Assembly (NCBI RefSeq): GCF_964213995.1
Contig: NC_135804.1
Location: 59,644,001-59,708,000 of the forward strand
DNA length: 64,000 bases
Reading direction: 5' to 3'
From: Mustelus asterias
Taxonomy: Eukaryota
Shown: positions 8,247 to 57,572 of the stretch, piece by piece
How positions within the stretch are numbered: position 1 is the stretch's first letter
Layout of the letters: each line of letters opens with the position of its first letter
The notes under the pieces: generated by a model
The model's input: the letters and a program-made list of their open reading frames with translations, nothing else
Databases searched by the model: none
Told to the model about the DNA's origin: nothing
Made by a program: the position numbers and the translations under genes

Positions 8247-11200
8247 CTAATTGTTTTTCGCCTCCATATAGCCAGTCTCTTTTACTCCATTTTGTTTCGC
8301 TCTCCGCAGTTGGGCATATTCAGTGCACCTTTCGTTAGCTTTGCCTTGTCTGAGCCAGTCAACGCTACACGTGAGTATATCAGGTCATTACCGACTTTCC
8401 TTTGTTGCGTCTGCAAGGTCAATGTTTGAAAATATTGTTTATTGGTTGCTTCGCAAGTCCGCTGTTCAAAAGATTCATCAGAAAGACACGCAGATCATCT
8501 TATAGACAGCATACGGGCAAAGTCAACAGAGACATATTTACTGCTACGTTCCTGGGTTTAGATGTTTCAGTAAGTGTAGGGAAGCTGGTAAAAGAGGTAG
8601 AGGAGTAGCATTGTTAATCAAGGATAGTTTAATGGCTGCGGAAAGGCACTTCGAGGGGGATCTACATACTGAGGTAATATGGGCTGAAGTTAGAAATAGG
8701 AAAGGAGCGGTCATGTTGTTAGGAGTTTACGATAGGCCCCCAAATAGTAATAGAGATGTGGAGGAAGAAATTGCTGAGCAGATTATGGATAGGTGTGGGG
8801 GTCACAGGGTAGTTGTCATGGGGGACTTTAACTTCCAAATATTGATTGGAACCTTTGTAGGTCGATTAGTTCAAATGGGGCAGTTTTTGTGCAGTGTGTA
8901 CAGGAGGGTTTCCTGACACAATATGGGAATAGGCCGAGAAGATGTGTGGCCACATTGGATTTGGTACTGGGAAATGAACCGGGCCAAGTGTTAGATTTGG
9001 TTGTGGGAGAGCACTTTGGAGATAGTGACCCCAATTTGGTGACTTTTGTTATTGCAATGGAGAGGGATAGGGCCGTACGGCAGGGCAAGGTTTATAATTG
9101 GGGGAGAGGTAATTATGATGCGATTAGGCAAGAATTAGGGGGCATAAGATGGGAACAGAAACTGTCAGGGAAAGGCACAAATGAAAAGTGGAACTTTTTT
9201 AAGGAACAAATACTGTGTGTCCTTGAGAGGTATGTCCCTGTCAGGCAGGGAGGAAATGGCTGAGTGAGGGAACCATGGTTCACAAAAGAGGTGGAATGTC
9301 TTGTAAGAAGGAAGAGGGAAGCTCATGTAGGGATGAGGAAACAAGGTTCAGATGGCTCGATTGAGGGTTACAAGTTAGCAAGGAATGAGCTGAAAAAGGG
9401 GCATAGGAGAGCTAGGAGAAGTCCTTGGCGGGTCGGATCAAGGAAAACCCCAAGGCTTTTTAGTCTTATGTGAGGCATAACAGAATGACCAGGATGAGGT
9501 TCGGGTCGGTCAAGGACGTAGTGGGAACTTGTGTATGGAGTCAGTAGAGGTAGGAGAGGTGATGAATGAATACTTTTCTGCAGTGTTGACGAAGGAGAGG
9601 GGCCATGTTTTTGAGGAAGAGAAGGGGTTACAGGCTAATAGGCTGGAGGAAGTAGATGTTCGGAGGGAGGATGTACGAGCAGTTTTGAATAAACTGAAGG
9701 TCGATAAGTCCCCTGGGCTTGATGAAATATATCCTAGGATTATTTGGGAGGCAAGGGATGAGATTGCAGAGCCTTTGGCTTTGATCTTTGGGTCCTCACT
9801 GTCCACGGGGATAGGGCTAGAGGACTGGAGAGTGGCGAATGTTGTTCCTCTGTTTAAGAAAGGGAATAGAAATGACCCTGGTAATTATAGGCCGGTTAGT
9901 CTTACTTCCGTGGTTGGTAAGTTGATGGAAAAGGTCCTTGCGGTTGGGATTTATGACCATTTAGAAAGATGCGGATTAATCCGGGATAGTCAGCATGGAT
10001 GCATGAAGGGCAAGTCGTGCCTCACAAATTTGATTGAATTTTTTGAGGAGGTAACTAAGTGTGTTGATGAAGGTAGGGCAGTTGATGTCATATACATGGA
10101 TTTTAGTAAGGCATTTGATTAAGTCCCCCATGGTCAGCTTATGATGAAAGTAACGAGGTGTGGGATAGAGGGAAGGTTGGCTGATTGGATAGGTAACTGG
10201 CTATCTGATCGAAGACAGAGGGTGGTGGTGGATGGAAAATTTTCAGACTGGAGGCAGGTTGCTAGCGGAGTGCCAGAGGGATCAGTGCTTGGTCCTCTGC
10301 TATTTGTGATTTTTATTAATGACTTAGAGGAGGGGGCTGAAGGGTGGATCAGTAAATTTGCTGATGACACCAAGATTGGTGGAGTAGTGGATGAGTTGGA
10401 GAGCTGTTGTAGACTGCAAAGAGACATAGATAAGATGCAAAGCTGGGCTGAAAATGGCAGATGGAGTTTAACCCTGATAAATGTGAGGTGATTCATTTTG
10501 GTAGGACAAATTTAAATGTGGATTCCAGGGTTAAAGGCAGGGTTCTGAAGACTGTGGAGGAACAGAGAGATCTTGGGGTCCATATCCACAGATCTCTGAA
10601 GGTTGCCACTCAAGTGGACAGAGCTGTGAAGAAGCTTTTATTAACAGGGGTTGGAGTTTAAGAGCCGTGGGGTTATGCTACACCTGTACAGGACCTTGGT
10701 GAGACCACATTTGGAATATTGTGTGCAGTTCTGGTCACCTCACTATAAGAAGGATGTGGAAGCGCTGGAAAGAGTGCAAAGGAGATTCACCAGGATGCTG
10801 CCTGGTTCGGAGGGTAGGTCTTATGAGGAAAGGTTGAGGGAGCTAGGGCTGTTCTCTCTGGAGCGGAGGAGGTTGAGGGGAGACTTAATAGAGTTTTATA
10901 AAATGATGAAGGGGATAGATAGAGTGAACGTTCAAAGACTATTTCCTCGGGTGGATGGAGCTATAACAAGGGGGTATAACTATAGGGTTCATGGTGGGAG
11001 ATATAGGAAGGATGTCCGAGGTAGATTCTTTACTCAGAGAGTGGTTGGGGTGTGGAATGGACTGCCTGCAGTGATAGTGGAGTCAGACACTTTAGGAGCA
11101 TTTAAGCGGTTACTGGATAGGCACATGGAGCACACCGGGATGATAGGGAGTGGGATAGTTTGATGAAGCTCGGCACAACATCGTGGGCCGCAGTGCCTGT

Positions 11201-14200
11201 TCTGTGCTGTACTTTCTATGTTCTATGCTCTTTGTAAACGGAAACGTATTTGGAAACATCTAGATAACTGCTTTCATCTTTATTATGTCTCTCTCTGTCC
11301 TAAAACATATTTTCAACAATTAGTGCTTCCTCTAAACCATACGACTCTTTCCAACTTTAACTCCGAACTGTTCTTTCTGTTGTGTTCCCTGGAAACTATC
11401 AGTCGTCGCAAGGTTATGTACGAAAATCAAGTGTTATCTTACCTTCATTCTTTCGCATTTGTTGCCACCTCGTAATGACGATCGCAAGCACGAGGAACGA
11501 CAACCCAACCAACGCGCGCACAGAAATCGAATAAAGTAACTTCTGGATATTTTCTGCAGGATTAATTGTAACATGAGGTAATAGTGGATATTAAATCAAC
11601 AAAAATAGGCTCCAAGATAGTTTATTATTTAAACTATGGTGATGGTTGCACTAATCCCGCAGTATTCAACGGAAGTAGAACGTTTGAATAAAAAGCTTGT
11701 TTGCAGCTAAGTATCTGCTGTATCTTCTTCCTCGAACATTTGGCGCATTATTGATTAATCTACGAAGACTAAAAGGCTGGAGTCACATGTAGGCCAGGCC
11801 AGGAAAGGGTGGCTGATTTCCTTTCCGAAAAGTCATCAGAGAGCCAGATCGGTTTTTGCGTCTGAATTATAGTTTCATGATACGTTACTAAAACAAATGT
11901 TTAGTTCAGTATTTATTAATTGGTTTTAAATGTCATGATGTGATTTGAACCGATATCCTTACAGCTTTAGCCTGCACCTCTTGAGTAATAGGCGAGTGAT
12001 ATTAAAATCACACCACCATCTTCCCTGAGTAGTATGCCATTGGAGATAATCGGACAACAACCAAATGGTTCACTCTTAACTGCCGCCTGAAAGGGTCTAA
12101 CAAGCTACTCCGTTAAAGGGCAATTAGGCATAAGCAATAAATGTTGGCCTAGCCAGCGACGTTCACATTAAATAAAAGAGTTTACTTTAAAAAATGCAGT
12201 GAACCGGACATACAGCGTTTTTTCCGGTTACAGTTTAAATGAGATTTATAAGACTGATTTCAGTTAAACCCGTCATGATCTGTAAGTAGGATGAGAAGCT
12301 GGTCATTTGGTTATTCCAAAACTCTGCACTGAACGTAACCGAACGTGTGACAATATCGGAAATCCCACGGCAATCAGTCCTTGCGCAAACAGCGTGCCTG
12401 CAGATCATAATAATAGTTTTCAAGCAAGACGAGTTCGCAACGGTCCAGTTGAAAGCATTAAAAAAAATAAACAGAAAGTGAAAAAGATTAATAACATTCA
12501 GGTTAAGAAATATTACACTAGAAAATATGAACGGATGTTTAATATTGTTCCGTTAGAAATAGAGGAATTTGAAAGCAAATCCGTTGGATTTTTGTTCTTG
12601 TATGGGATGTGAGCATTGCTGACGAAGCCAGCATTGGCCATTCCCAATTGCCCCTGAACAGAGTGGCCCGCTAAAGAGTTGCAGGGGGCAGTTAAGAGTC
12701 AACCACGTTTCCCTAGCTCTGAAGTCACATGTAAACCTAGCTGGGTAAGGAGAGCAGATTTCTTTCCCTGAAGGACATTCGTGAACCAGATTGGTTTTTA
12801 CCACAATCGATCATAGTTACATGGTCACCATTACTGAGACTAGCCTGATATTCCATAGCTATTAATTGAATTATGTTTCCAGAAGCTGCCCTTGTGGGAT
12901 GTGAATCCATGTCCTCAGATTGATTACTAGTCTGAGTGCATGGCTGGCTATATAAATCGATTTCAACACATTGCATTGAATTCAATGTAAAGGCACTTTA
13001 ATGTTTCTGTTGATATTTCCCGTGACATTTCCGTGATTATTAATATGCATAAAACTTACGAAAAATTTCACTATGAATTCTACTGTAGCTGGCTTCCCTT
13101 TTAGAACAATTTTTCCCCTACCTCGGTTCGGTTCAGGAATCGTGTACACCACAATAGCCGGAGTCTTGAGGGTGACATGAGATACCAGGCATGTATAATT
13201 GCCGTCTTTCGGTACAGGCTGAATCTCAACCAAAGTGCTGGAAACTTCATACAGTCCCTCTCTGTTCTGCACTTTACTGGTGTGTATTCCTGATGCAGTT
13301 TCGACGCCATTTTTATACCAAGTAAGGGTGAAATTTTCCGGATAAAATGCAGCCGTTTTACAAACGAGGGTCAGAGGCGCAGTCGAATTCCCTTCAGTTG
13401 TCCTGGAGACAAGATTCAGTGGGGTTGGGGCCGCTGCGGAGCAGAAAATGAACATAGTTCTGTGCATGGTTTGGAGAAATTAAATTCATTTTTGACGCTC
13501 GGTTAATATTCCTAATCACTGGCAATTCCTATTTCCTGTATTTGAATGTTACACACAAGATCAGTATAGATCTAATCTATATAAAGACTGGCATTCGATC
13601 AATTCCAATAATTTTTGAATTCCCTGTCGGACAGGGTGAAGTGATTTGCGAATCAACGTTCTGTTCAAATCGCCCAGAGAATTAAATCTTGATGAGACAG
13701 TCGTCTCGCTGAGTTGTTACGTGTTTTATGTGCAATGACATGACAGAGAGTGACGAATAATATTCATATTCTTGATGATGAAATGAGCGTTTTAATGCTC
13801 CTTTAACGCCGCAGCTTGACATTTGACTAAACAAATAACTTTCAGTTGAATCTGCCGAATTTTCACCAACACAGCCTCTCTGTTAAATTATAGGCAAAAT
13901 ACTGCGGATGCTGGAGTCTGAAACAGCCTCTGTGTTGTTTATTTATTGGAAAATTAGTGAATTTGGCAGCCATGTTGTGTCTGAAACTCCAATCTGTTGA
14001 GTGAATCGATTTGGTCAACAATTAGACAAACATTGAGTATTTGAATACGCGCCGTATCGTTCTTTGAAATTTACTTGAAGGAATACAGTTATTCATGGAC
14101 TATTAAAACTAAGCCAAAAGCTTTGTATATTTATCTTGGGAATGGAGCATTAGTATAAAAGATTTTCTGTCAGTTTTACTTCAGGAATTCATTCTGAGTG

Positions 14201-15006
14201 CCGCCAATGTAAATCTGGTGCATAAATTGACTTTATAGTTGTGATGTGTTTGATAAATATTACTAATATATTCAGTACTCTCCGAGTGGCATTGCAGGTA
14301 TAATTAGCATTTTAATGCAGAGGACACGAATGTACAACTCACTTATCGCGAAATATGTTCATAGGCATGATTTCACTGACAGAAAGTATGCACATACCCG
14401 ATTTTTGTGTTTGATATATTATGGCGATCGCGCTCACCTGTGTTCCAATCTTACCATGCACAATTAGATGCGATCCAGTTCCATTTCCTCGACCTACTCC
14501 CGGACGGAACACCGTACAGTGATAGATTCCAGAGTCTTGAAATGTCGCATTTACTAAGCGAAAGAAACCGCTACCTTTACTTCCCATACCAAACCTTTTT
14601 CTCTTGTCTGGGCTTGAATGCAGGAATTCATTCTCACCATGTTTCCACCATAACACCCGTACCCAGGCTTGGGGTTGAAAAATGTGGAATATGCAGTAGA
14701 AGGTGATGTTTCCCCCTCTGGATACAGTCGTTTCTTTTGGTGCTTGAGACACACTGAACGAAGAGTCGTCCGCAGCTGTCAGAAAGATAGACAAACACAG
14801 GTTAATTGCATTAGATACAACATAAAGGTAGAAAAGTGAAAGCATGATCTAGAGCGAGGAAATAAGGTTCTTTAAATTAATATGAAAACTACTTCCTCGG
14901 AAGTTATTAATTAAAGTAACATGGTAAGTGAAAATCTAGTGCCTGTGTGAATAATTCCTCGGAGGATCAAGTACAGAAGCACCATGATCGTTGTCATCAT
15001 TTGCAT
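8247..15006 (-). CDS. Gene A: multi-exon VJ-C1-TM Ig-superfamily receptor with ITIM (NKp30/SIRP-like non-rearranging antigen-receptor-like protein); possibly a young pseudogene
   Basis: Phase-1 exons 15006-14943 (leader), 14775-14455 (V), 13433-13122 (C1) and 11553-11443 (TM) join in frame without stops. A cytoplasmic exon at 8410-8282 carries LIYSRV. The linking cytoplasmic exon was not resolved. Confidence 0.85.
8282..8410 (-). CDS. Gene A terminal cytoplasmic exon with ITIM (LIYSRV); ITSM TEYAQL in shifted frame
   Basis: Acceptor gaccttgcag|. Phase 0 reads TQQRKVGNDLIYSRVALTGSDKAKLTKG...ME*. The shifted frame reads ANERCTEYAQLRRAKQNGVKETGYMEAKNN* to 8247. Confidence 0.7.
   Translation of the reverse strand, partial: TQQRKVGNDLIYSRVALTGSDKAKLTKGALNMPNCGERNKME
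8548..11230 (+). mobile_element. CR1-clade LINE, 5'-truncated ORF2 (APE+RT), frameshifted; intronic and antisense to gene A
   Basis: ORFs from 8611 to 11163 carry [28 protein letters not shown] and KFADDTK. Tail (TTCTATG)n. Same subfamily as 50900-54887. Confidence 0.95.
11443..11553 (-). CDS. Gene A transmembrane exon
   Basis: ttaatcctgcag| ... |gtaaga, 111 nt, phase 1-1. Reads ENIQKLLYSISVRALVGLSFLVLAIVITRWQQMRKNE. Not in the ORF track. Confidence 0.85.
11770..12020 (-). mobile_element. SlmI/MetaSINE-like SINE, decayed
   Basis: ggagtcacatgtaggccagg...gatttcctt is the reverse complement of the core of the 19420 copy. Confidence 0.6.
12590..12950 (-). mobile_element. SlmI/MetaSINE-like SINE
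   Basis: Reverse complement of the core (ctggttcacgaatgtccttcagggaaagaaatctgc) and of the tail. Confidence 0.75.
13122..13433 (-). CDS. Gene A C1-set Ig exon
   Basis: ttttctgctccgcag| ... |gtaggg, 312 nt. Reads [23 protein letters not shown]...YEVSSTL...YTCLVSH, matching the C1/MHC-Ig signature [FY]xCx[VA]xH. Confidence 0.95.
14455..14775 (-). CDS. Gene A V-set Ig exon with germline-joined J-like G strand
   Basis: tctttctgacag| ... |gtaaga, 321 nt. Reads VSQAP...GNITFYC...LWWK...DSGIYHC...GNGTGSHLIVH. Confidence 0.95.
14943..15006 (-). CDS. Gene A leader (signal peptide) exon with GC donor
   Basis: gccATG start; MQMMTTIMVLLYLILRGIIHT plus G, 64 nt, phase 1. Donor ACAG|GCACTA aligns with gene B ACAG|GTACTG. 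Confidence 0.75.
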
Positions 15007-15084
15007 GGCTTACAACTGTTGCCTCTCTGTAGTAACTGCGAGTTTACAGCTTTTAAAAATAGCTTGCTGTTAGTTTTCCATCAG

Positions 15085-15120
15085 AGACGTCGCAGTGACG
15101 TTTAACATCCGGAAAGTGAG
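15085..15120 (-). promoter_or_regulatory. Candidate proximal promoter motifs of gene A (ETS CCGGATGT, CRE-like TGACGT, IRF-like GAAAGTGA)
   Basis: Motifs cluster 80-115 bp upstream of the ATG. Motif match only. Confidence 0.3.
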
Positions 15121-15269
15121 GTCTCAGAAACTAAGCTTCCATTTTAAGTGAGATTTTCTAATTTTTGCAACTACTAAATTCCCTGGAATTACATGTTTTA
15201 CCGGCAGCATAAAGGAAATGGAATATAGATTTTCTAACGCTGAATTTACGAACATTCTCGGAGTTGGTT

Positions 15270-16200
15270 TGTTTCCTGACAGCTAATGGTTTTGTAACCA
15301 CGATGGACATCAGAGGGGTTGTGAACGAAAATAAATTGAGAATACGCACCATGGTCATATTCAGACGTATTGTAATTGGGGACGGTTGTCTGCCTGTTTT
15401 TGTATTGCACAAGAGCTGGAAAAATTCATGCAGGGACATGATCTGTGAGCTGACAACATATGCACTGTCTTCAGTGAGGACCAGTAGGTTGGGGATATGG
15501 TGACTCTTTCCACGGAGACCACAGTCGAATACGAGTTTTTTGAGAAGGAGTGATGACAATGGTACCCATGGGCATAAAGTCGTCAGATAAGCCGCCAGTT
15601 AGCATGCCAGCTATGATGGGGACTAAAAAAGTGGACGACAAGTTGTTCATTCGCGTATAAATTATGGCACAGAAAATGGTTCTTGGATAATACGTGTTTA
15701 GAGTGTGTTTGGGGAAGAAGACGAGATGTTTCTGCGTTACAGAGTTTCACGGTTATGGTAGGATGCGGAGTAGCAATTTGGTTCGCTAGATAAGTGGAAA
15801 GAAGGAAGCAGCAGAAATCATTGGCTGGAAGATAATTTGATGACGAGGGATTCCTTGAGCTTCTTGTAATATTCGCAAAGCGAGGAATGTTGAGAGATTT
15901 AAGCAGAAGGTTTTGGGTTTGGGGGATGGGTAGGGAGGGTGAATATGCGGGGTGGTGGGTTGTTTGTGGTGAGTTGTTTGTGGGAGTGGAGGTGTGGGGG
16001 GAACAAATAATTAGTTATCGTTGCTCTCCAGCACAATTGTCCAGTAATGAGCAGTTGTGGCTGTGAACGGTGAGACTTTGGGAAGTTTCTCTTGATTTAA
16101 CCAGATGAGGCTCTGGATGGTTAGACCAGTTGTTTGTAAGTCCTAGCCAATCCTTTTGGAATTGAGGATGCGAAGGTTAATGCTGTGCCATTATTACAGT
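15270..16200 (-). mobile_element. Highly decayed L2-like LINE remnant
   Basis: ORF 15158..15559 (SLLLKK...HIPNL...VVSSQI) echoes the L2 RT segment TPLLKK...RPISNL...VVASQI. Confidence 0.4.
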
Positions 16201-17069: not shown

Positions 17070-17420
17070 CTCCCTTATTCCTTCACGGATGTTGATGTCG
17101 CTGGAAAGATCACCATTTGTTACTCATCCCGAATTGCCCTATCAGAGCAAATTCAAGAATCAGCCATTTTGTTGTACATCTGGAGTCACGTGCCGGCCAG
17201 ACTGGACAATAAGGGAAATTTCCTTCTCTAAAGGGCATTACTGAAACAAAATGTTGATAGTCACCATCACTGATAGTAAATTTAGATTCCGGATAAAATA
17301 GCTGCAGTCAAATACCTCAATAACTTAAATACCAGCTGCGGTGCTGGTATTGGATCCAATGCTGCCAAATCGTTACAATCGGTCCTCTTAATTATTTGGT
17401 CAGCCACATTACCACGACGC
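17070..17420 (-). mobile_element. SlmI/MetaSINE-like SINE, decayed
   Basis: tctggagtcacgtgccggccagactgg...atttccttctctaaagggcatta is the reverse complement of the SINE core. Confidence 0.6.
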
Positions 17421-23545: not shown

Positions 23546-23576
<31 letters not shown>

Positions 23577-24558: not shown

Positions 24559-24570
24559 CTGTCCCCTCTC

Positions 24571-25312: not shown

Positions 25313-26251
25313 TTGCTGGTAATGGCTTCAGGGATGGCAGTTCAGGCAGTATGCTGCATCTCCTGTGGGATGTATGTGGTGAGGAAATCCAGTAGTGTTT
25401 CAGGAGATTTTAGTTGTAAGAAGTGCATTAGATTGCAGCTTCTGGAGGAGCGTGTAAAGGAGATGGAGGGGGAGTTAGAGGAACTCCGCATAATTCGGGA
25501 GGCGGAGGTGGAAGTTGATAGGAGTTATAGAGAAATAGTAACTCCTAGAAATGAGGCTTGGGTCAATGCCAGGAGGAGGGGTAAGAAGCAATCGGGAAGA
25601 CAATCCCCTGGGGCGGTTCCCCTCCATAATAGGTTTTCGGTGCTGGAGGCTACAGTTGAGGAGGAATCAACTGAGCATAGAGAGCAGATCTCTGGGGGTG
25701 AGCCGAGTGAGAAAGCTCAGGAGGTTAGGGGCTGTAAAAGACTGGGCCTTGTGATTGGGGACTCCACAATTAAGGGGACAGATAGGAGGGTCGGAACTAA
25801 AGGGAGGGACTCAGGGTTGGTGTGTTGCCTACCAGGGGCTGGGGTCCGGGATGTGTCTGACAGGGTATTCAGGACTCTTAGGGGGGAGGGAGATAAACCA
25901 CAAGTTATTGTACATGTGGGGACACACGACATAGGGAGGATAGGGGAAGGGGATATTAGGCAGGGATTTATGGAGTTGGGGTGGAAACTAAAGGCCAAGA
26001 CTGACAGAGTGGTTATCTCTGGACTCTTGCCTGTACCACGGGATAGTTTAGAGAGGAATAGGGAGAGGGAAGGTTTGAATTCATGGCTGAGGGGATGGTG
26101 CAGGAGGGAGGGGTTCAGGTACTTAAGCAATTGGGGCTCGTACTGGGGAAGGTGTGACCTCTATGAGAAGGATGGTCTACACCTTAATCAGAAGGGGACC
26201 AATATCCTGGGGGGTAAATTTGCTAAGGCCATGCAGGGAGGTTTAAACTGA
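25313..26251 (+). CDS. CR1 ORF1p: zinc finger/leucine zipper plus SGNH-esterase domain
   Basis: CISC...CKKC, heptad LEERVKEMEGELEEL, and esterase blocks VIGDS / PGA / HVGTHD / DGLHLN. The first ATG is at 25322. Confidence 0.92.
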   Translation: MLVMASGMAVQAVCCISCGMYVVRKSSSVSGDFSCKKCIRLQLLEERVKEMEGELEELRIIREAEVEVDRSYREIVTPRNEAWVNARRRGKKQSGRQSPGAVPLHNRFSVLEATVEEESTEHREQISGGEPSEKAQEVRGCKRLGLVIGDSTIKGTDRRVGTKGRDSGLVCCLPGAGVRDVSDRVFRTLRGEGDKPQVIVHVGTHDIGRIGEGDIRQGFMELGWKLKAKTDRVVISGLLPVPRDSLERNREREGLNSWLRGWCRREGFRYLSNWGSYWGRCDLYEKDGLHLNQKGTNILGGKFAKAMQGGLN

Positions 26252-26302
26252 TTCGGGGGGGGGGGAGGGATCCTGAGTAGGGGGGCTGAAAGTGAGGGAT
26301 GC

Positions 26303-29123
26303 ATGGATGGGGACTGCAATGCACGGCATTGCAGAGGTGGGGTGGAGCAGGGTTTGAAATGTGTATACTTCAATGCCAGGAGTATTCGCAATAAAGTGGG
26401 TGAACTTGCAGCGTGGATCAGTACCTGGGACTTCGATGTTGTGGCTATTTCAGAGACATGGATAGAGCAGGGGCAGGAATGGATGCTGCAGGTCCCGGGG
26501 TTCAAATGTTTTAGTCGAAGTAGGGAAGGAGGTAGAAGAGGGGGAGGGGTAGCATTATTGGTCAGAGATTGTATCACAGTGTCAGAGAGGAGGTTTGATG
26601 AGGACTTATCTGTTGAGGTAGTATGGGCGGAGATTAGAAATAGGAGAGGAGAGGTCACCCTGTTGGGAGTCTTTTATAGACCTCCTAAAAGTTCTAGAGA
26701 GGTTGAGGAAAGGATTGCGGAGTCAATCCTGCTTAGGAGTGAAAGTAATAGGGCAATTGTTATGGGGGATTTTAACTTGACTAATATTGACTGGAATTGT
26801 TATAGCTCTAGCTCGTTAGAGGGGTCAGTTTTTGTTCAAAGCGTGCAGGAAGGTTTTTTGACTCAGTATGTAGACAGGCCAACTAGAGGTGAGGCTATAT
26901 TGGATCTGGTGCTGGGAAATGAGCCAGACCAGGGTGCTAGACTTGGAAGTTGGTGTGCATTTTGGTGATAGTGACCACAATTCGGTTACGTTCACCTTAG
27001 TGATGGAAAGGGATAGGCATGAACCTCGGGCCAGTGGTTTTAGCTGGGGGAAGGGTAATTATGAGGCTATTAGAAGAGAATTAGGAAACATAGGTTGGAC
27101 TAGGAGATTACAGGGACTGGGAACGTCCGACATGTGGAGTTTTTTCAAGGAGCAGCTACTGCGAGTCTGTGATAGGTATGTCCCTGTCAGGCAAGGAGGA
27201 ATTGGTAGGGCTAGGGAACCGTGGTGCACCAAAAAAGTTTCTTTGTTGGTTAAAAAGAAAAAGGAGGCTTATGTTCGGATGAGACGTGAGCACTCGGGTA
27301 GTGCACTAGAAAGCTTTAGATTGGCAAAGAAGGAGTTGAAGAGCGAGCTTAGAAGGGCTAAAAGGGGACATGAGAAGACTTTGGCGGATAGGGTTAAAGA
27401 GAATCCTAAGGCGTTCTATAGGTATGTCAAGAACAGAAGGTTGGTTAGGGCAAGTTTAGGGCCAGTTATAGATGGCAGAGGGAAGTTATGTGTGGAACCG
27501 GAGGAGATTGGTGAAGCATTGAACCAATATTTCTCTTCGGTGTTCACGCAAGGGGACATGAATATAGCTGAGGAGGACACTGGGTTGCAGGGGAGTAGAA
27601 TAGACAGTATTACAGTTGATAAGGAGGATGTGCAGGATATTCTGGAGGGTCTGAAAATAGATAAATCCCCTGGTCCGGATGGGATTTATCCAAGGATTCT
27701 CTGGGAGGCAAGAGAAGTGATTGCAGAGCCTCTGGCTCTGATCTTCAGGTCGTCGTTGGCCTCTGGTATAGTACCAGAAGATTGGAGGTTAGCGAATGTT
27801 GTCCCATTGTTTAAGAAGGGGAACAGAGACTTCCCCGGGAATTATAGACCGGTGAGTCTCACTTCTGTTGTCGGCAAGATGTTGGAAAAAATTATAAGGG
27901 ATAGGATTTATATTTATTTGGAGAGTAATGAATTGATAGGTGATAGTCAGCATGGTTTTGTGGCAGGTAGGTCGTGCCTTACTAACCTTATTGAGTTTTT
28001 TGAGAAAGTGACCAAGGAGGTGGATGGGGGCAAGGCAGTGGACGTGGTATATATGGATTTTAGTAAGGCGTTTGATAAGGTTCACCATGGTAGGCTTCTG
28101 CAGAAAATGCAGATGTATGGGATTGGGGGTGATCTAGGAAATTGGATCAGGAATTGGCTAGCGGATAGGAAACAGAGGGTGGTGGTTGATAGTAAATATT
28201 CATCATGGAGTGCGGTTACAAGTGGTGTACCTCAGGGATCTGTTTTGGGGCCACTGCTGTTTGTAATATTTATTAATGATCTGGATGAGGGTATAGTTGG
28301 GTGGATTAGCAAATTTGCTGATGACACCAAAGTCGGTGGTGTGGTAGACAGTGAGGAAGGGTGTCGTAGTTTGCAGGAAGACTTAGACAGGTTGCAAAGT
28401 TGGGCCGAGAGGTGGCGGATGGAGTTTAATGCGGAGAAGTGTGAGGTAATTCACTTTGGTAGGAATAACAGATGTGTTGAGTATAGGGCTAACGGGAGGA
28501 CTTTGAATAGTGTGGAGGAGCAGAGGGATCTAGGTGTATGTGTGCATAGATCCCTGAAAGTTGGGAATCAAGTAGATAAGGTTGTTAAGAAGGCATATGG
28601 TGTCTTGGCGTTTATTGGTAGGGGGATTGAATTTAGGAGTCGTAGCGTTATGTTGCAACTGTACACAACTCTGGTGCGGCCGCACTTGGAGTACTGTGTG
28701 CAGTTCTGGTCCCCACATTACAGGAAGGATGTGGAGGCTTTGGAGAGGGTGCAGAGGAGGTTTACCAGGATGTTGCCTGGTATGGAGGGGAGATCCTATG
28801 AGGAGAGGCTGAGGGATTTGGGATTGTTTTCGCTGGAAAGGCGGCGGCTAAGAGGGGATCTTATTGAAACATATAAGATGATTAGAGGTTTAGATAGGGT
28901 GGATAGTGATAGCCTTTTTCCTCTGATGGAGAAATCCAGCACGAGGGGGCATGGCTTTAAATTGAGGGGGGGTAGTTATAGAACCGATGTCAGGGGTAGG
29001 TTCTTTACCCAGAGGGTGGTGAGGGATTGGAATGCCCTGCCAGCATCAGTTGTAAATGCGCCTAGTTTGGGGGCGTTTAAGAGATCCGTAGATAGGTTCA
29101 TGGACGAAAAGAAATTGGTTTAG
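26303..29123 (+). CDS. CR1 ORF2p (APE endonuclease + reverse transcriptase), one frameshift at about 26932
   Basis: ORF 26303..26968 (YFNARS, ISETW, MGDFN) and ORF 26889..29123 ([33 protein letters not shown]) overlap. An extra G in cagggtg breaks EPDQ-VLDL. Confidence 0.92.
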
Positions 29124-29231
29124 GTTGGAGGGTCACAGTTTTTTTTTAAACTGGTCGGTGCAACATCGTGGGCCGAAGGGCCTGTTCTGCGCTGTAATGT
29201 TCTATGTTTTATGTTCTATGTTCTATGTTCT

Positions 29232-40700: not shown

Positions 40701-40719
40701 GTGCGACACAAGGGAAAAC

Positions 40720-45480: not shown

Positions 45481-45699
45481 CAATGTGCTATTCCTGCTTC
45501 CCCTATAGTCGAAGCGTTTTGCTAATCATCTTTCCGTTAGAGAAACATACATGGCCTCTGGACTACATATGACTCCAGTCCTAAACTATTATTGTGTACT
45601 CTAATCTGTTCCCTGAAAAGGGGAAGTAACGCAGTGAGTTGTAACGAAACGTCAAGGAGAACAGCACGTACCTCAAGACAAAATACTCCTAACATTGTA

Positions 45700-48600: not shown

Positions 48601-48655
48601 ATGTCGCTGAGAACTGCAGTTCAGTGTATGGTTCTTCTGTGGATGGTCTGGACAG
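48601..48655 (+). CDS. Gene B leader exon
   Basis: [18 protein letters not shown] plus G|gtactg, 55 nt, phase 1. It is preceded by acceptor-like ttcattttacag, suggesting an upstream non-coding exon. Confidence 0.8.
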
Positions 48656-51600
48656 GTACTGTTGCTTGTTATATGTTGCCATTCAGAATACCTTAATTTC
48701 TATTTTAGAATATTCGCAAAGGTTCTACGTTAAAAATTAGATGCGTTACAGCTCCAATTCGATCGTTGGTGCTTCTTAATTGTTCTTGTACTTTACTTAT
48801 CTTAGTTTTTGTTTTCTTTGACGCATACAGTTCATCGCCGTTCTTTTTTTATAGGTGCGAAAGTAACATGGAGCAACGTGGATCAGTTCCCTAAACATTT
48901 GACGGTTGCCAGGGCTGACAATGTTTCCATGTTCTGCACATTTCCCATATTTGAAGACGCTCCTGAAGGTTCTTGGTGGAAACGGGGCGAGGAATCTGTT
49001 CTGGAACCAGACAGCAGAAAGAAAATTTATCTAAAGAAGGGCAGTAGTTCATTTGAAGTTCTGAATGCGAGTGTTGCAGACTCCGGAATGTATCACTGTT
49101 CAGTAAAACATCAACAGAATAAGATTGGGGATGGAAGTGGCTCCCAGCTCACCGTGTGTGGTAAGTATCACTGTACCGCGGAAAGGATGCTTTTCAGCTG
49201 TGTGTGATTTATGTAATTTGAACATATCACGAGATGAAAATCTGGATTCGTTTTTCGCTGCTGGTATTTCATTTCTGTTGACCTGCAGGTTCAACGGCCG
49301 TCAATTGCCTGTCTCCTGATTCGCACCACTGCCCAAGATCAACTTCACCCACTCCCTGTCTATCCTCGTGACGTTATAAAGTGTTTTTCATCCAACGAGT
49401 GCAGTTGGTTCAGTTATCACTGTTACTGAAAGTGATACTGACATAAAAAGATCGCATCAACTCTGAGATTGAGATTAATCAATTGGATGAGTTGCTCGAT
49501 TTTCTTGTCATCGAAACATCAGTGCCTAAGTGCAAACATTGAACAATTTTAACACGGCCTCTGTCGAATCTTTTGTAAACGATTAATTCATGTCAATAGG
49601 TCCCAGAATTTACCTTTGTTAAAAGCTCAATAGTGTTAATCTCTTCTCATTGAATGGGCGGCACGGTAGCACAGTGGTTAGCACTGCTGCTTCACAGCTC
49701 CAGGGACCTGGGTTCGATTCCCGGCTTGGGTCACTGTCGGTGTGGAGTTTGCACATTCTCCTCGTGTCTGCGTGGGTTTCCTCCGGGTGCTCCGGTTTCC
49801 TCCCACAGTCCAAAGATGTGCGGGTTAGGTTGATTGGCCATGCTTAAAAATTGCCCCTTAGAGTCCTGAGATGCGTAGGTTAGAGGGCTTAGCGGGTAAA
49901 TGTGTAGGGATATGGGAGTAGGGCCTGGGTGGGATTGTGGTCGGTGCAGACTCGATGGGCCGAATGGCCTCCTTCTGCACTGTAGGGTTTCTGTGATTTC
50001 TTTCTGGGTTTCTGTGATTGCTTTCAATATTTCACGCACCAGTTAACTTTTGAACTCATGCTTTATATTGCCAAGCTATTATTTTTTAAACTGAATTGTC
50101 CAAATTTTGATTTGAGAAAGATTCTTATACATGCGTATGAAGAGGATGGAGTTAAGTCTGACACATCGAGTTGAGGTCTATCCACCATAATGTAACTGAA
50201 TATCAAAGTAACCGAGCAAGATGGAAAGGCCTACTCCTGTTCCTATCTTGGTACTCAATGCTGCACGCTTGTGTCAGTTGATAACATTGTTTGAGATGCC
50301 AAACTTTCACTGAATATTCCTGCAATGCATATCAGAGGGCATGCGGTGATCTTAACCTGAATGTTGCTTTTCAACCGAAGTCCTGGGATATACAGGACAG
50401 TGAAGATATCAATTGCCTGCTTTGAGACCCTTTGGCGTCAGCCAGTTGGATTCCTCAAAACCAATAATTCCAGACAGACTATCACCGAACGTTCCTGTGT
50501 ATTCCTGCTGTTTAAATCAGGATTTCTATTTAAATTCCCCAAACCTGACACGGAAGTTACAAGACAGCAGAAAACAATATCCTCATTCGCTTGCACGGAT
50601 AATCTATAGCATTGCCTATTACAGCTAAAAAAGAATCTATGGTTTTAAAAAATGCAGGCATTCTGAATCACTTGGAGTAAAGGTTAACATTATTAACTCT
50701 TTAAACTGTCACCGCTCTGTGTTCCTGCTTTTTAAACTGTCACCGCTCTGTGTTCCTGCTTTTTAAACTGTCACCGCTCTGTGTTCCTGCTGTTTAATCT
50801 GTCGCCGCTCTGTGTTCCTGCTTTTTAAACTGTCACCGCTCTGTGTTCCCACTCTTTAAACTGTCACCGCTCTGTGTTCCTGCTTTTTAAACTTCTTTCC
50901 CAGTGCACTCTGAGGAAGGGGAAAAAGGGTTCAGTGTTCCATTGGAGCAATTCTTTTTCTTTGTAGCAGTAAGTTATATGGAGGGGATGGAAGTGAAGGC
51001 AGTGCAATGTGCCTCCTGCAGAATGTTTGAGGTGAGGGACACCGTCAGTGTGTTTGCTGATTACACCTGTGGGAGATGCACCCACCTGCAGCTCCTCCAA
51101 GACCGCGTTAGGGAGCTGGAGCTGGAGTTGGATGAGCTTAGGGTCATCAGGGAGGCAGAGAGGGCCATAGACACAAGCTTCAGGGATATGGTTGCTCCAG
51201 GGAATGAAAATAGATGGGTGACAGTGAGAGGGGCTGGGAGGAAGCAGTCGGTGCGGGGTCCCCTGTGGTCGTTCCCCTTAGCAACAAGTATTCCACTTTG
51301 GATACAGGTGAGGGGGGCGACCTACCAGTGGTAAGCCGCAGTGACCAGATCGCCAGCGATGAGTCCGTCCCTGTGGCTCAGAAGGGAAAGGGGGAGAGCG
51401 CTAGAGCTATAGTTATTGGGGACTCGTTTGTTAGAGGGATAGATAGGAGGTTCTGTGGCAACAAGAGAGACTCACGGATGGTATGTTGCCTCCCGGATGC
51501 CAGGGTCCGTGACATCTCCGTCTGTGTCTTCAGGATTCTAAAGGGGGAGGGGGAACAGTCACTAGTCGTGGTGCACGTCGGCACGAAAGACATCGGTAAG

Positions 51601-54600
51601 AGAGGGGACGGGGATTTAAAACAGCTATTCAGGGAGCTAGGGTGGAAGCTGAGAGCCAGGACAAAACAGGTTGTCATCTCTGGTATGTTGCCGGTGCCAC
51701 GAGATAGCGAGTTGAGGAACAGGGACAGAGTGCAGTTAAACACATGGATGTAGGGATGGTGTAGGAGGGAGGGTTTCAGCTATGTGGATAATTGGAACAC
51801 TTTCTGGGGAAGGTGGGACCTGTACCAACAGGACGGGTGCACCTGAACCAGAGGGGCACCAATATCCTGGGAGGGAAATTTGCTCCAGCTCTTCGGGGGG
51901 GTTTAAACTAATTTGTCAGAGGGATGGGAAAAGGAGTTGTAGTCCGGAGGTCAGTGAGTGTAGTGAGGTACTGGGAAGGGTATCATGGTCAAAGGTGGGT
52001 ACCAGCAGACAAGAAGGTGGGTTGAAGTGTGTCTACTTCAATGCAAGGAGCATCCGATATAAGGTAGGTGAACTTGGGGCATGGATTGGCACTTGGGACT
52101 ACGATGTTGTGGCCATTACGGAGACATGGGTAGAACAAGGACAGGAATGGTTGTTGGAAGTTCCGGGGTATAGATGTTTCAGTAAGTGTAGGGTAGCTGG
52201 TAAAAGAGGTGGGGGAGTGGCACTGTTAATCAAGGAGAGTGTAACGGCTGCAGAAAGGCATTTCGAAGGGGATCTGCCTACAGAGGTAATATGGGCTGAG
52301 GTTAGGAATAGGAAAGGAGCGATCACGTTGTTAGGAGTTTACTATAGGCCCCCAAATAGTAATAGAGATGTGGAGCAAGAAATTGCGAAGCAGATTATGG
52401 ATAGGTGTGGAGGTCACAGGGTAGTTGTCATGGGGGACTGTAACTTTCCAAATATTGATTGGAGCCTTTATAGGTCGAATAGTTCGGATGGGGAAGTTTT
52501 TGTGCAGTGTGTGCAGGAGGGATTCCTGACACAATATGTGGATAAGCCGACAAGAGGTGGGGCCACATTGGATTTGGTAATGGGAAATGAACCGGGCCAA
52601 GTGTTGGATTTGGTTGTGGGAGAGGACTTTGGAGATAGTGACCACAATTCGGTGTCTTTTGTTATTGCAATGGAGAGGGAGAGGGCCATGCGGCAGGGCA
52701 TAGTTTACAATTGGGGGAGAGGTAATTATGATGCAATCAGGCGGGAATTAGGAAGCATAGGATGGGAACAAAAATTGTCAGGGAAAGGCACGAATGAAAA
52801 GTGGAACTTTTTCAAGGAACAAATACTGCGTGACCTTGATAGGTATGTCCCTGCCAGGCAGAGAGGAAATAGCCGAGTGAGGGAACCATGGTTCACAAAA
52901 GAGGTGGAATGTCTTGTCAAGAGGAAGAAGGAAGCGTATGTAACGTTGAGAAAACAAGGTTCAGTTGGCTCGATGGAGGGTTACAAGTGAGCAAAAAATG
53001 AGCTGAAAAAGGGGCTTAGGAGACCTAGGAGGGGGCATGAGAAGTCCTTGGCGGGTCGGCTCAAGAAAAACCCCAAGGCTTTATACTCTTATGTGAGGAA
53101 TAAAAGAATGACCAGGGTGAGGTTGCGGCCGGTCAAGGATGGCAGTGGGAATTTGTGCATGGAGTCAGAAGAGATAGGACAGGTGATGAATGAATACTTT
53201 TCTTCGGTGTTCACCAAGGAGAGGGGCCATGTTTTTGAGGAAGAGAGGGTGTCACAGGCTGATAGGCTGGAGGAAGTAGATGTTCGGAGGGAAGATGTAC
53301 TAGCAATTTTGAATAAACTGAAAGTTGATAAGTCCCCTAGGCCTGATGAAATATATCCTAGGAGTCTTTGGGAGGCAAGGGATGAGATAGCAGAGCCTTT
53401 GGCATTGATCTTTGCGTCCTCACTGTCCACGGGGATGGTGCCAGAGGACTGGAGAGTGGCGAATGTGGTTCCTCTGTTTAAGAAAGGGAATAGAAAAGAC
53501 CCTGGTAATTATAGGCCGGTTAGTCTTACTTCCGTTATCGGTAAGTTGATGGAAAAGGTCCTCAGGGATAGGATTTATGACTATTTAGAAAGATGCAGCT
53601 TAATCCGGGATAGTCAGCACGGATTTGTGAAGGGCAAGTCTTGCCTCACAAATTTGATAGAATTTTTTGAGGAGGTAACTAAGTATGTAGATGAAGGTAG
53701 TGCAGTTGATGTCATATACATGGATTTTAGTAAGGCGTTTGATAAAGCCCCCCATGGTCGTCTTATGAAGAAAGTAAGGATGTGTGGGATAGAGGGAAGT
53801 TTGGCCGATTGGATAGGTAACTGGCTATCTAACAGAAGACAGAGGGGGGTGGTGGATGGAAAATTGTCGGACTGGAAACCGGTAACCAGCGGAGTGCCAC
53901 AGGGATCAGTGCTTGGTCCTCTGCTATTTGTCATTCTTATAAATGACTTGGAGGAGGGGGCTGGAGGGTGGATCAGTAAATTTGCTGATGACACCAAGAT
54001 TGGTGGAGTAGTGGATGAGGTGGAGGGCTGTTGTAGGCTGCAAAGAGATGTAGATAGGATGCAGAGCTGGGCTGAAAAATGGCAAATGGAGTTTAACACT
54101 GACAAATGCGGGTGATTCATTTTGGTAGGACAAATGTAAATGTGGATTACAGGGTCAAAGGAAGGGTTCTGAAGAATGTGGAGGAACAGAGAGATCTTGG
54201 GGTTCATATCCATAGATCTCTGAAGGTTGCCACTCAAGTGGATAGAGCCGTGAAGAAGGCCTACAGTGTGTTGGCGTTCATTAACAGGGGGTTTGAGTTT
54301 AAGAGCCGTGGGATTATGCTGCAACTGTACAGGACCTTGGTGAGACCAAATTTGGAATATTGTGTGCAGTTCTGGTCACCTCACTACAAGAAGGATGTGG
54401 AGACACTGAAAAGAGTGCAAAGGAGATTTACCAGGATGCTGCCTGGTTTGGAGGGTAGGTCTTATGAGGAAAGGTTGAGGGAACTTGGGCTTTTCTCTTT
54501 GGAGCGGAGGAGGTTGAGAGGAGACTTGATAGAGGTTTGTAAGATGATGAGGGGGATAGATAGAGTGAACGTTCAAAGACTATTTCCTCGGGTGAATGGA

Positions 54601-57572
54601 GTGGTAACTAGGGGGCATAACTATAGGGTTCATGGTGGGAGATATAGGAAGGATGTCCGAGGTAGGTTTTTTACTCAGAGAGTGGTTGGGGAGAGGAATG
54701 GACTTCCTGCAGGGATAGTGGAGTCAGAAACTTTAGGAACATTTAAGAAGCTATTGGATAGGCACATGGAGAACTTCGGGATGATCGGGAGGAAATGGCT
54801 TGATTTGAGTTTCAGACAAAGCTCGGCACAACATCGTGGGCCGAAGGGCCTGTTCTGTGCTGTACTGTTCTATGTTCTATGTTCTATTATCTTGAAGTTA
54901 AAAATTACCCGTTTAACAATAGGATAAATAACGAAACATTTTCGTAATAAAGTCAGATAAGTTGTGACAGTCGATCTAGCTGACACAATTAGTATGAACT
55001 TTATATTCATTTACGGGTTTTATTCATTTACTTGCTGGGCCAGCATTCACTGCCCATCCCCACTCCAGAGGGAATTTGAGATCAATCACAGGCCAGGTAA
55101 GAATGGCAGATTTCCTTCCCCAAAGGAAAACATGGAACCAGATGGGTCGTTACGCCAATCGACATTGGTTTCATGGTATTTCCAGATTTTTATTCGATTC
55201 AAATTTCACTATCCAACTGTGGGCTTTGAAACCAGGTCCCCAGATCTGGCTCTGGGTCTCTCCAGTGACAACAGCACTACACCACTGCTGTTCCGTAAAC
55301 AACTGTAATGCAGATTTTAATCCATACATTTATAATCAACATTTATAATGCCTTTATTGACATTAGAGACATTTCGGCGATTCACGGTCTTCATAGTCAG
55401 AGGATAATGTGCGTGGTAATAAATGAAATATTCGAACATCAACGAATTTTAAAGTAGGCACGCAAAACAACATACGGCAAGTACATTATGCGAAAAACGA
55501 AAGAGGACTCCACTGCTCCGTTCTGACTGCGTGGCCCAGGCATCTGTATACACATAGAGATGAATTGCATTCGGGCCATCGCTGCTAACCCCAATAGTTT
55601 GCCAGGACCTGATGTTTCCTTTCAATGTCGCGTACCTCCATGTATGCGAACAATACCGCGAGATTCAGTCCCGCTGTTTACGATACACCCGCATACTTTG
55701 CAGTGCGCCGTTAAATTATTTCTAAAATGAATACAAACACGATGTTTAAGAAATCACAGAGCGAATAACTATTTCCACTGTTAAGAGTGTAACATAATTG
55801 TTGCGGCATACAAACGCCAATGTGTTCTTTACATTAAAAATTACCTTCTATTTCCCTGTTAAAGTTCCCCCAACCCCCCTGAAACTCGTTCAGGTTGAAG
55901 GGATTTCTGCAACTTCTCTGAGATTCGAGTGTAAAACGGCTGCCTTTTACCCGGAGGATTTCAAAATCTCCTGGCGCAGAGATGGTGTGGGAATTCTGGC
56001 CGGAATAGAAACTGTGAGACACAAGACAGTGGATGGTCTCCGAGAGGTCTCCAGCTCTTTGGAAGAGGCACAGCCTGCTTCGAGCCGAATAGTTTATACG
56101 TGCCTGGCATCTCATATCTCCCTTAAGGTGCCCGCCAGTGTCAGCTATATCGACATTCAAGGTAAGATTGGGCACATTTGCAGCAGCAAGTGCATTTGCA
56201 GCGTCCAACCTATAGTTATTTATTAAACATTTAGCAGGGCAGCTGTTCAAACACAAAGTTGCAGGGTTCTTTATTCTCAATGTCACATCAATGTAAATGA
56301 ATTAAAATACCATGGTTTGTAACTGCAGGAGAGGGAATATTTCCCTGAAAAGATCTGAAACGGGAGGGCGATGTGCGAAGTACTCAAAACTGAAAGCTCA
56401 TTTGTTATCAAATTCTTGCCAAATGAAATGAACGTACACATGAAATGGATCAGTTTTAGCAGTATCACTTTAATTGGACAATTCCTGTGTGGAACTTTAG
56501 CCAAGGATATCGTTCAAGGACATTTCCTCCATGATCCAGATCCTTTTGACCATTATTGAACTGTTTCTCTTTGATCCAAACACTAAACTTCGGGGGAAAA
56601 AAATGTTCCGCCTGGAGTTACATCATTCATTGAATTCCTTATTTCATTATTTTAACTCTCAAACTGCGAAGGCATAAAAATTGCTTCCAACGCTCCTCTG
56701 GTTGCAATTTCGGTTGTGGACCCTTTACTCCAATAAACAATACCCTATTACAGTTATTAGCACTGTGGGTGTAAACTTTAAAAATGAGGAAACTACAGTG
56801 CAAGTACAGAGCATTTGGCGCTTGATCCGTGTTCTGGTGCGAGTGCATCTGCCATGAGGGAAACGACCCAAGCTACCAAACTGAATATCAGAATCCGAAA
56901 GCATAACTTTCGGCCTGATGAAGTTAACCGTGCGGGAAGATCATAACCTGATCATCAGCGAGCTAAATTTTGATCGCTGAGGGCGGTGTTGTGTGACCGA
57001 GTGGTACTGTCCCACATTATTATTATAGGGTCCAGAGGAACATTTCTGTTTTTTCCTGCACAGCCAAAAATAATTTTTAATTCATTTGTTTGGGATTTCT
57101 TTACCTATTTTGCTGTTACATCTGGTAGAAAGAACAAGCACACATATTATATCCTAAAATGGACATCAGTGTCCTATTTGAAGAGAAGCCAATTGCCGAC
57201 AAAATGGCGCTGGCACCAAACAACAGGCTGTCTTGGAAGATGGAGTGGATTGTGTTAAAATGTTCACATGGTGCTCAATTTGCAGAGCGTCTTTTGAGGG
57301 TATTTTCCATTCGCTCGACTTTGGAAATTTAATATCGGTTACAAAGTTTAGAGTAGCAATTGTATGGAGCTCTTTCATGTCCAGAAGCCAGCACTATTTG
57401 GTTTCATTCAATAATTCATATGTACAGACAATTTATGTGTATATTTTAATCCTGCACTGCAGATAACAGTTTCCGGAACATGATGATTTTACGGCTTGTT
57501 CTGGGTTGTTTGATAATTCTTGGATTGCTGGGCATAATTGTGGATGGACCATGTAGCATCTTTCAAATGAAG
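48601..57572 (+). CDS. Gene B: multi-exon VJ-C1-TM Ig-superfamily receptor with TM arginine (putative activating paralog of gene A)
   Basis: Exons 48601-48655, 48855-49160, 55865-56161 and 57463-57572 all have GT-AG boundaries and join in frame without stops. Confidence 0.88.
48855..49160 (+). CDS. Gene B V-set Ig exon with germline-joined J-like strand
   Basis: ttttttatag| ... |gtaagt, 306 nt. Reads VDQFP...NVSMFC...SWWK...DSGMYHC...[10 protein letters not shown]. Confidence 0.95.
49656..50019 (+). mobile_element. HE1-type V-SINE, full length
   Basis: Same structure as the 29407 copy. Confidence 0.93.
50697..50893. repeat. 31-bp minisatellite, about 6 copies (ttaaactgtcaccgctctgtgttcctgcttt)
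   Basis: Period 31 (50701, 50732, 50763...). It abuts the 5' end of a CR1. Confidence 0.95.
50900..54887 (+). mobile_element. Near full-length CR1 (ORF1+ORF2, several stops/frameshifts) in gene B V-C1 intron
   Basis: ORF1 remnants (CASC..CGRC, VIGDS, HVGT), APE 51782..52990, RT 53048..54115, C-terminus 54106..54927, and (TTCTATG)n tail. Confidence 0.95.
55020..55290 (-). mobile_element. SlmI/MetaSINE-like SINE, decayed
   Basis: aggccaggtaagaatggcagatttccttccccaaagga...gaaccagatggg. Confidence 0.65.
55865..56161 (+). CDS. Gene B C1-set Ig exon
   Basis: tttccctgttaaag| ... |gtaaga, 297 nt. Reads VPPTPLKL...[21 protein letters not shown]...EVSSSL...YTCLASH. Confidence 0.95.
57463..57572 (+). 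CDS. Gene B transmembrane exon
   Basis: cctgcactgcag| ... |gtaagg. Reads [37 protein letters not shown]. Confidence 0.85.

Follow-up and report, generated by a model that had tools for sequence, protein, structure and literature searches.

Two head-to-head V(J)-C1 genes of the shark Mustelus asterias probably represent a large SIRP-like family of cartilaginous-fish receptors with inhibitory-type and activating-type members

Of the living animals that have antibodies and T-cell receptors (TCRs), the sharks, rays and chimaeras are the oldest, and non-rearranging V(J)-C1 genes, among them UrIg, UrIg2, PRARP, NKp30 and SIRP, have been sought as relics of the gene split by the RAG transposon. NKp30 (NCR3) has a single V domain and is not known to have a C1 domain, the basic transmembrane (TM) residue of SIRP-beta is a lysine, and PRARP, which Fu et al. 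are said to have described in J Immunol in 2019, is reportedly a gene pair of bony vertebrates with a VJ-C1-TM architecture and an immunoreceptor tyrosine-based inhibitory motif (ITIM). In published accounts, the V-C1 receptors of the SIRP family are presented as a link to antigen receptor evolution (published in 2009; PMC2785349), UrIg consists of a VJ domain with three C domains and UrIg2 of a VJ domain with nine or more (PMC12227049), and the VJ genes PRARP and NKp30 are given as linked to the MHC (PMC10751288). Here we describe two genes, A and B, in a 64,000-nucleotide stretch of the Mustelus asterias genome (contig NC_135804.1, positions 59,644,001 to 59,708,000 of the forward strand; hereafter the window, numbered from its first letter). 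Both are members of a family already present in RefSeq under generic names. We consider it probable that this is a large family of non-rearranging V(J)-C1-TM immune receptors of cartilaginous fishes, most like SIRP, in which gene A is of an inhibitory and gene B of an activating type. No description of the family was found in the literature searched, a scope that did not extend to the PRARP, UrIg and shark NCR3 papers; the supplement tables of PMC12227049 and PMC10751288 might list such genes.

Genes A and B are arranged head to head: the minus strand carries gene A (8247-15006) and the plus strand gene B (48601-57572), with 33.6 kb from leader to leader (15006 to 48601). Exons, splice sites and tblastn agree on two paralogous genes of leader, V, C1-set and TM exons joined by phase-1 introns, as the initial annotation of this stretch had described them. 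The exons of the gene models were searched separately, and full-length comparisons rest on database proteins. The exons are as follows.

15203-15352, minus strand: gene A, upstream first exon, used by the RefSeq model of Mustelus asterias (protein P0002), of which residues 1-50 match 50/50; donor CCG/GTAAAA, phase 1
14943-15006, minus strand: gene A, family-type leader, MQMM...LRGIIHT plus 1 base; GC donor instead of GT, at 14941-14942
14455-14775, minus strand: gene A, V(J) exon; AG acceptor and GT donor, phase 1 at both ends; 106/106 identical to P0002
13122-13433, minus strand: gene A, C1-set exon; AG acceptor and GT donor, phase 1; Pfam C1-set
11443-11553, minus strand: gene A, TM exon; AG acceptor and GT donor; ends in phase 1; Arg codon at 11516-11518
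11346-11395, minus strand: gene A, candidate juxtamembrane exon of 50 bases, phase 1 to 0; weak acceptor and donor
8247-8410, minus strand: gene A, last exon; ITIM LIYSRV at 8366-8383 and, downstream, TEYAQL, which resembles an immunoreceptor tyrosine-based switch motif (ITSM)
48601-48655, plus strand: gene B, leader, 18 residues plus 1 base; donor CAG/GTACTG; resembles the leaders of family members P0050 and P0185
48855-49160, plus strand: gene B, V(J) exon; Pfam V-set 2.1e-07, I-set 1.1e-07; 75% identity to Heterodontus P0057
55865-56161, plus strand: gene B, C1-set exon; Pfam 23.3 bits against a cut-off of 21; 69-72% identity to P0050 and P0057
57463-57572, plus strand: gene B, TM exon of activating type, with Arg, 16 hydrophobic residues and Asp; phase-0 donor AAG/GTAAGG

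The layout of V, C1-set and TM exons is borne out by Pfam calls in both genes, with V-set matches on the V exons (E 2e-08 for gene A, 2.1e-07 for gene B) and C1-set matches on the C1 exons (E 2.8e-12 and 8.5e-05), both of the latter exceeding the curated cut-off. Genes A and B are identical at 43/99 positions of V, 48/98 of C1 and 5/34 of the TM exon, with tblastn E values of 1e-17 to 1e-24, far beyond chance, and all five shared motifs quoted in the initial annotation occur at their places in both genes, on both strands. A J-like strand lies inside each V exon (GTGSHLIV in gene A, GSGSQLTV in gene B; pattern GxG[ST]xLxV), and no recombination signal sequence (RSS), neither a CACAGTG heptamer nor a nonamer, was found in or beside either V exon (14300-14900 and 48750-49350 scanned), which upholds the description of the genes as non-rearranging. 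The V plus C1 layout and the phase-1 exon structure are shared with TCR and immunoglobulin (Ig) light chains, and Ig lambda equals SIRP-alpha in profile score (see below), whereas the family has no V/J split or RSS and carries its signalling motifs in the chain itself. Each gene has one C1 exon, and no additional Ig exons were found within the window; other tblastn matches there were rejected as Ig exons, being parts of long interspersed nuclear elements (LINEs) contained in chimeric gene models. Outside repeats, the C1 exons are the only part of the two genes that aligns at the DNA level (66.5% over 269 bases), all long matches between the halves of the window being LINE copies, and a segmental inverted duplication was therefore rejected as the origin of the two genes.

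With the C1 exon of gene A as query, an exhaustive HMMER search of 1.84 billion representatives returned 932 proteins at E<=1e-3, 10 of them at E<=1e-30. The best single-C1 match is P0002 (XP_078066559.1), from Mustelus asterias itself and named 'tyrosine-protein phosphatase non-receptor type substrate 1-like'; beyond the first and V exons listed above, gene A matches it at 97% in C1, 31/36 in the TM exon and 87-97% in the last exon. Thirty matches were looked up, and every one of the 29 that carried a name is from a cartilaginous fish (13 genera, among them Mustelus, Scyliorhinus, Heterodontus, Heptranchias, Stegostoma, Chiloscyllium, Cetorhinus, Carcharodon, Mobula, Narcine, Amblyraja and Callorhinchus). 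Hemitrygon and Pristis were added by the P0002 search and by a profile of 31 members, and the family ranges over sharks, rays, skates and one chimaera, with members of the same species on one chromosome-sized contig. At the sensitivity reached, the family is confined to cartilaginous fishes, the group to which the initial annotation had assigned it. The automatic names of the members are SIRP-alpha-like, SIRP-beta-1-like, tapasin-related-like, MHC class II beta-like, CD276 homologue, NCR3 ligand 1-like (B7H6-like) and Ig lambda-like, the kind of generic RefSeq labelling that had been foreseen. Three further searches were bounded by a word index, and a blank from them carries little weight: P0002 returned 23 family rows together with 10 reptile multi-V proteins at 22-27% identity, the family profile returned 16 proteins, all from cartilaginous fishes, and a search with the tail only kept 2 of 144 candidates, both from Callorhinchus.

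Alignment of 31 members, combined with a pattern scan, distinguishes two signalling modules. In the inhibitory type the TM segment is uncharged and often bears a Cys on the outer border; a small juxtamembrane exon (...R.EEL) follows, and the tail holds two or three ITIM-like motifs (..Y[AS]x[LIV]) together with TEYAxL. In the activating type an Arg precedes 16-18 hydrophobic residues that end in ...VDH, and the tail is about a dozen residues long; this type is found in 6 species in addition to gene B.

P0005, Heptranchias: activating-type member
P0050, Scyliorhinus canicula: activating-type member
P0063, Heterodontus: activating-type member
P0132 and P0145, two Chiloscyllium species: activating-type members
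P0170, the chimaera Callorhinchus: activating-type member

The Arg...Asp TM module is common to chimaera and sharks. The TM and last exons of gene A are of the inhibitory type and the TM exon of gene B is of the activating type, its translation containing the Arg and no tyrosine motif, as had been noted before. Because this exon ends at a phase-0 donor, gene B must have at least one further exon, which was not found. About 700 bases past that exon, 58281-58427 shows 39% identity over 49 residues, with a stop, to the C-terminal part of Heptranchias P0005; this could be a conserved part of the intron or of the 3' sequence, or an exon that has decayed.

Separate phylogenies of the V (68 rows) and C1 (100 rows) domains were computed on the family; with about 100 columns each, they contain many unresolved forks, and well-supported clades alone are counted here. 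In the V tree, gene B falls in a 7-row clade (support 99 in the SH-like approximate likelihood ratio test, SH-aLRT) whose other rows are an inhibitory form from Heterodontus, two activating forms from Scyliorhinus and three inhibitory forms from rays, and the neighbours of gene A are Mustelus P0002, Scyliorhinus, Heterodontus and Heptranchias members and a Mobula protein. The C1 tree is concordant with the V tree; in it, a Heptranchias activating form sits among the relatives of gene A, and at least 7 module changes are counted over 35 inhibitory, 10 activating and 55 unclassed rows. A Heterodontus inhibitory form is among the nearest relatives of gene B (V 72-75%, C1 72%). Closely similar ectodomains on opposite modules, the hallmark of paired receptors, were encountered at the level of the family, both modules occurring in the gene B clade and in the C1 clade of gene A, and not for A against B (V 43/99, C1 48/98). 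To judge from these alignments and trees, A and B are separate lineages that predate the shark/ray split, each with both modules, and they appear as neighbours rather than counterparts. The initial annotation had taken them for an inhibitory/activating pair; the two forms do exist in the family, but A and B stand apart in both trees and are not each other's pair. Taken as a whole, what it observed is real in anatomy and partly confirmed, and its interpretation is partly supported.

The described system that the family appears to resemble most is SIRP. Shared with SIRP are an N-terminal V domain with a J-like strand, a C1-set domain next to it, and the occurrence of ITIM-tailed members beside short-tailed members with a basic TM residue; SIRP is also the best non-rearranging V plus C1 match in the PDB, supplies the nearest ESM Atlas clusters and is the source of the RefSeq names. 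Against the PDB, the family profile scores 62.2 bits with SIRP-alpha (2wng) over V plus C1, and 45.0 on its third domain, with Ig lambda at 62.2 bits and UrIg2 at 46.9. In the ESM Atlas, Callorhinchus P0054 lies nearest to two SIRP-alpha clusters, at 0.97 each. On the other side, the family has one C1 domain as against two in SIRP (V-C1-C1), comprises many genes over megabases whereas SIRP genes are few, and carries its Arg in the outer part of the TM segment together with a terminal Asp. A and B might instead be true SIRP-alpha and SIRP-beta orthologues, in other words a cartilaginous-fish SIRP locus whose products bind CD47 and in which one C1 domain was lost or is not yet duplicated. The RefSeq names, the PDB and Atlas matches, the ITIM and TEY-type tail, which resembles the pattern known from the SIRP-alpha tail, and a skate member with two C1 domains (P0015) are all consistent with that idea. 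Yet a single C1 exon per gene instead of two, an Arg near the outer leaflet instead of the lysine familiar from SIRP-beta, a tail-only search that returned no SIRP and a profile score tied with Ig lambda make such orthology unlikely, and we prefer to regard the family as SIRP-like and possibly PRARP-like.

Gene B raises a different comparison, with NKp30, with which it shares a VJ-type V exon, a TM Arg and a short tail, gene A being long-tailed in type. On this basis A and B might belong within the shark family of NCR3 or of its ligand B7H6, as parts of an NKp30/B7H6-type recognition system, a proposal that could draw on the GNGTGS-like G strand and TM Arg of gene B, on three relatives (from two rays and one basking shark) named automatically as NCR3 ligand 1-like, and on the multigene NCR3 family of nurse sharks (accessions MT914154-MT914161) reported in PMC12227049. 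However, genes A and B both have a C1-set exon, in contrast to the single V(J) ectodomain known for NKp30, no NCR3-like name occurs among the 29 named relatives, and no NKp30 chain appears among the best 60 of the 439 matches of the V exon. This placement is highly improbable.

When the C1 exon alone is compared with the PDB, UrIg2 ranks highest on its summed score (E 1.4e-16, made up of three domains at 14-24 bits apiece), with SIRP-gamma and SIRP-alpha next at about 1e-12; the V exon of gene A, taken alone, gives generic V-type matches (VNAR, light chains, PD-L1). Like UrIg and UrIg2, the family has a non-rearranging single-exon VJ followed by C1-type sequence, but UrIg is a secreted protein with three C domains, UrIg2 carries at least 9 C domains, and ITIM tails and a paired activating form are absent from both, whereas genes A and B have a single C1. 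P0001, a 1105 aa protein of Carcharodon carcharias named 'titin-like', heads the matches of the C1 exon search; it contains 10 C1-type stretches and, judged by the description in PMC12227049, looks like a UrIg2-type gene. With PRARP as described, gene A shares, as architecture only, the non-rearranging VJ, C1, TM and ITIM-type tail; the comparison sets a gene pair of bony vertebrates against a large cartilaginous-fish family with an additional Arg-TM form. [quoted passage not shown] The shared VJ-C1-TM-ITIM architecture attributed to PRARP (a gene named in PMC10751288), the first rank of UrIg2 and the Cys at the outer TM border of 13/21 aligned inhibitory-member rows with a TM segment (our own count) would suit chains of that sort. 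The UrIg2 score is, however, a sum over three domain matches, and we rate this reading of A and B as very unlikely.

The TM exon of gene A exits in phase 1 and the ITIM frame demands a phase-0 acceptor between 8411 and 8410; a direct TM-to-ITIM splice was rejected on phase, as it stops after 7 codons, and gene A therefore needs a small exon between the two. P0002 has a 14-residue exon at this place, for which local alignment and pattern searches of the window returned nothing. In an exhaustive scan of stop-free AG...GT/GC stretches of the right phase, many short candidates came up, of which 11346-11395 is the only one homologous to the family exon; it retains an ...NSSEL motif, loosely like ...NRSEEL of P0002 and ...RGEEL of P0007. 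RNA contigs gave this candidate juxtamembrane exon no support. The ITIM and ITSM of gene A stand in different frames in the window, whereas in P0002 they share a frame. An additional base following position 8345 unites the two frames in one contig of read run X1 and in the DNA run X7 (60.1 of 60.1 depth), a run whose listed unique pieces differ from the window by 0-2 letters. Since X7 carries the frame-restoring base at full depth, the one-base deficit, in a short A/T run, is most likely an assembly slip or one allele, and probably the former. The TM codon at 11516-11518 reads Arg, a residue that the initial annotation had not mentioned, in the window and Cys in P0002, and the Arg sits at a helix depth like that of the activating-type Arg. 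In combining a TM Arg with an ITIM exon the window copy recalls KIR2DL4-type receptors, in which both occur in one chain, but the Arg of gene A is not conserved and the Mustelus asterias protein has Cys.

At its 5' end, gene A has two candidate starts. The family-type leader resembles those of Heptranchias P0162 and P0163 (...LTLRGIIYTAAD); the first exon at 15203-15352 has no clear signal peptide. The RefSeq models of gene A orthologues in Mustelus and both Scyliorhinus species (P0002, P0010 and P0164) start with first exons other than the family-type leader that have no typical signal peptide, which could reflect an artefact of prediction or a genuine switch of first exon among carcharhiniform sharks.

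Because the window copy carries several such blemishes, the inhibitory tail of gene A may be impaired in this genome or assembly. Taken further, gene A here could be a decaying or signalling-dead copy, or one switched to a short-tailed Arg-TM form, leaving no working inhibitory gene in the window. The GC donor of the family-type leader, the replacement of the TM Cys by Arg, the missing counterpart of the P0002 juxtamembrane exon with only a weak-sited homologous candidate in its stead, the one-base deficit after 8345, and a LINE in an intron across which a direct splice from the TM exon to 8410 stops after 7 codons speak for decay. Its V, C1, TM and last exons are nevertheless open, the V exon being identical to the RefSeq protein at 106/106 positions; X7 has the frame-restoring base, the probable RNA run X1 shows exon coverage, and GC-AG introns exist. 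We regard a dead or switched gene A as possible, if doubtful. The earlier statement that gene A leads to an ITIM exon stands as regards the exon, which is present; its link to the rest of the gene in the window is imperfect in phase, in frame and in the weakness of the small exon.

Read contigs mapped to the gene A stretch 8200-14199 bear on its transcription. X1 is a probable RNA run, by our guess, with an organism code different from that of X7, a DNA run that matches the window. A 552-letter contig of X1 lies on 13125-13432, ending 1-3 bases from both borders of the C1 exon, and its 117 and 127 further letters do not match the adjacent sequence; DNA contigs of X7 cross the same borders. The C1 exon is spliced in X1. 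The X1 depth in the bins flanking this exon (1.58 and 0.69) equals 75 and 33 exon bases at depth 4.21, and the depth in unique intron bins, exon bases discounted, is about 0. In bin 11400-11599, which holds the TM exon, a depth of 2.44 equals about 116 letters at depth 4.21, which would fit a C1-TM joint with about 5 letters beyond the donor. A 157-letter contig (depth 4.3) covers 8232-8374 in the last exon. If X1 is taken as RNA, gene A is probably transcribed in a close relative. Spliced transcripts reaching the ITIM exon had been anticipated for gene A: the cutting of the C1 exon at its borders and the coverage of the last exon in X1 agree with this, and TM-to-tail joints were not seen among the contigs. 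In a 'fish metagenome' RNA-Seq run (X3), a contig on 13008-13228 spans the border between C1 exon and intron, differing at 15 of 221 letters (93% identity), and may be unspliced RNA or the DNA of a related shark in the sample.

How receptors of this family would signal can be sketched from their modules. For gene A, we infer that ligand binding at the V domain would lead to phosphorylation of the ITIM (LIYSRV) and the ITSM-like TEYAQL of the tail, and that the phosphorylated motifs would recruit phosphatases of the SHP-1/SHP-2 type, so that activation is damped. [quoted passage not shown] The ligand, the phosphatase or adaptor partner and the cell type in this scheme are putative.

Several points weigh against reading A and B as inhibitory-type and activating-type members of a SIRP-like family. 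The likeness to SIRP is non-specific, given that Ig lambda ties SIRP-alpha at 62.2 bits; neither SIRP nor NKp30 is among the best 60 of the 439 matches of the gene A V exon, and the tail-only search (2/144 candidates, both Callorhinchus) gave no SIRP tail. In the window, the leader donor of gene A is GC, its TM segment contains an Arg, its small exon is weak and its frame differs by one base. X1 is RNA only by guess, at a depth of about 4 and with an organism code other than that of X7; by depth arithmetic, roughly 5 letters of its contig seem to extend past the TM donor, as would be expected of a form that is unspliced or reads through and so lacks the ITIM, and the joints from TM exon to tail are not among the contigs seen. 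Finally, a 2014 survey found no FcR-gamma homologue among shark genomes (PMC4016189).

The remainder of the window is CR1-like retrotransposon sequence, including two LINE copies within the introns of the genes.

8548-11231, plus strand: CR1-like LINE copy in the gene A intron between TM and last exon, antisense to the gene and filling most of the intron
50891-54927, plus strand: CR1-like LINE in the gene B V-C1 intron, with endonuclease and reverse transcriptase open reading frames (ORFs); Pfam Exo_endo_phos 1.8e-21, RVT_1 1.8e-31

The copy in gene A shows 89% identity over 2727 bases to the part at 52160-54885 of the copy in gene B. Between the genes, 25313-29123 is a nearly full-length CR1-like LINE, with a GDSL-esterase domain in ORF1 (E 1.1e-07) and an ORF2 of 744 residues (reverse transcriptase E 1.1e-35). 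As 27931-29218 and 61425-62713 (on the other strand) are 99.5% identical, the CR1-like family appears to have been recently active. A 144-residue ORF at 5472-5906 has a Pfam ALKBH8_N match (E 9e-10) and may be part of a repeat.

A class-wide, large family with braking and triggering modules would place the paired-receptor logic of KIR, LILR and SIRP early in jawed vertebrates, on an ectodomain shaped like that of antigen receptors. The animals concerned are reported to be without KIR/LILR-type genes and, since the 2014 survey records no receptors of the leukocyte receptor complex (LRC) type in sharks (PMC4016189), the family may fill the role of such receptors. A more far-reaching scenario, which we consider distinctly unlikely, would make the family the cartilaginous-fish survivor of the V(J)-C1 stock ancestral to both SIRP/PRARP-type genes and rearranging receptors, with the Arg...Asp module coupling a TCR-shaped germline chain to an adaptor of the CD3-zeta/DAP12 type and the family supplying the whole paired natural killer (NK)/myeloid receptor repertoire. 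Independently of that scenario, the SIRP-like family of V(J)-C1-TM genes to which A and B belong offers a concrete gene set for tracing the ancestry of SIRP.

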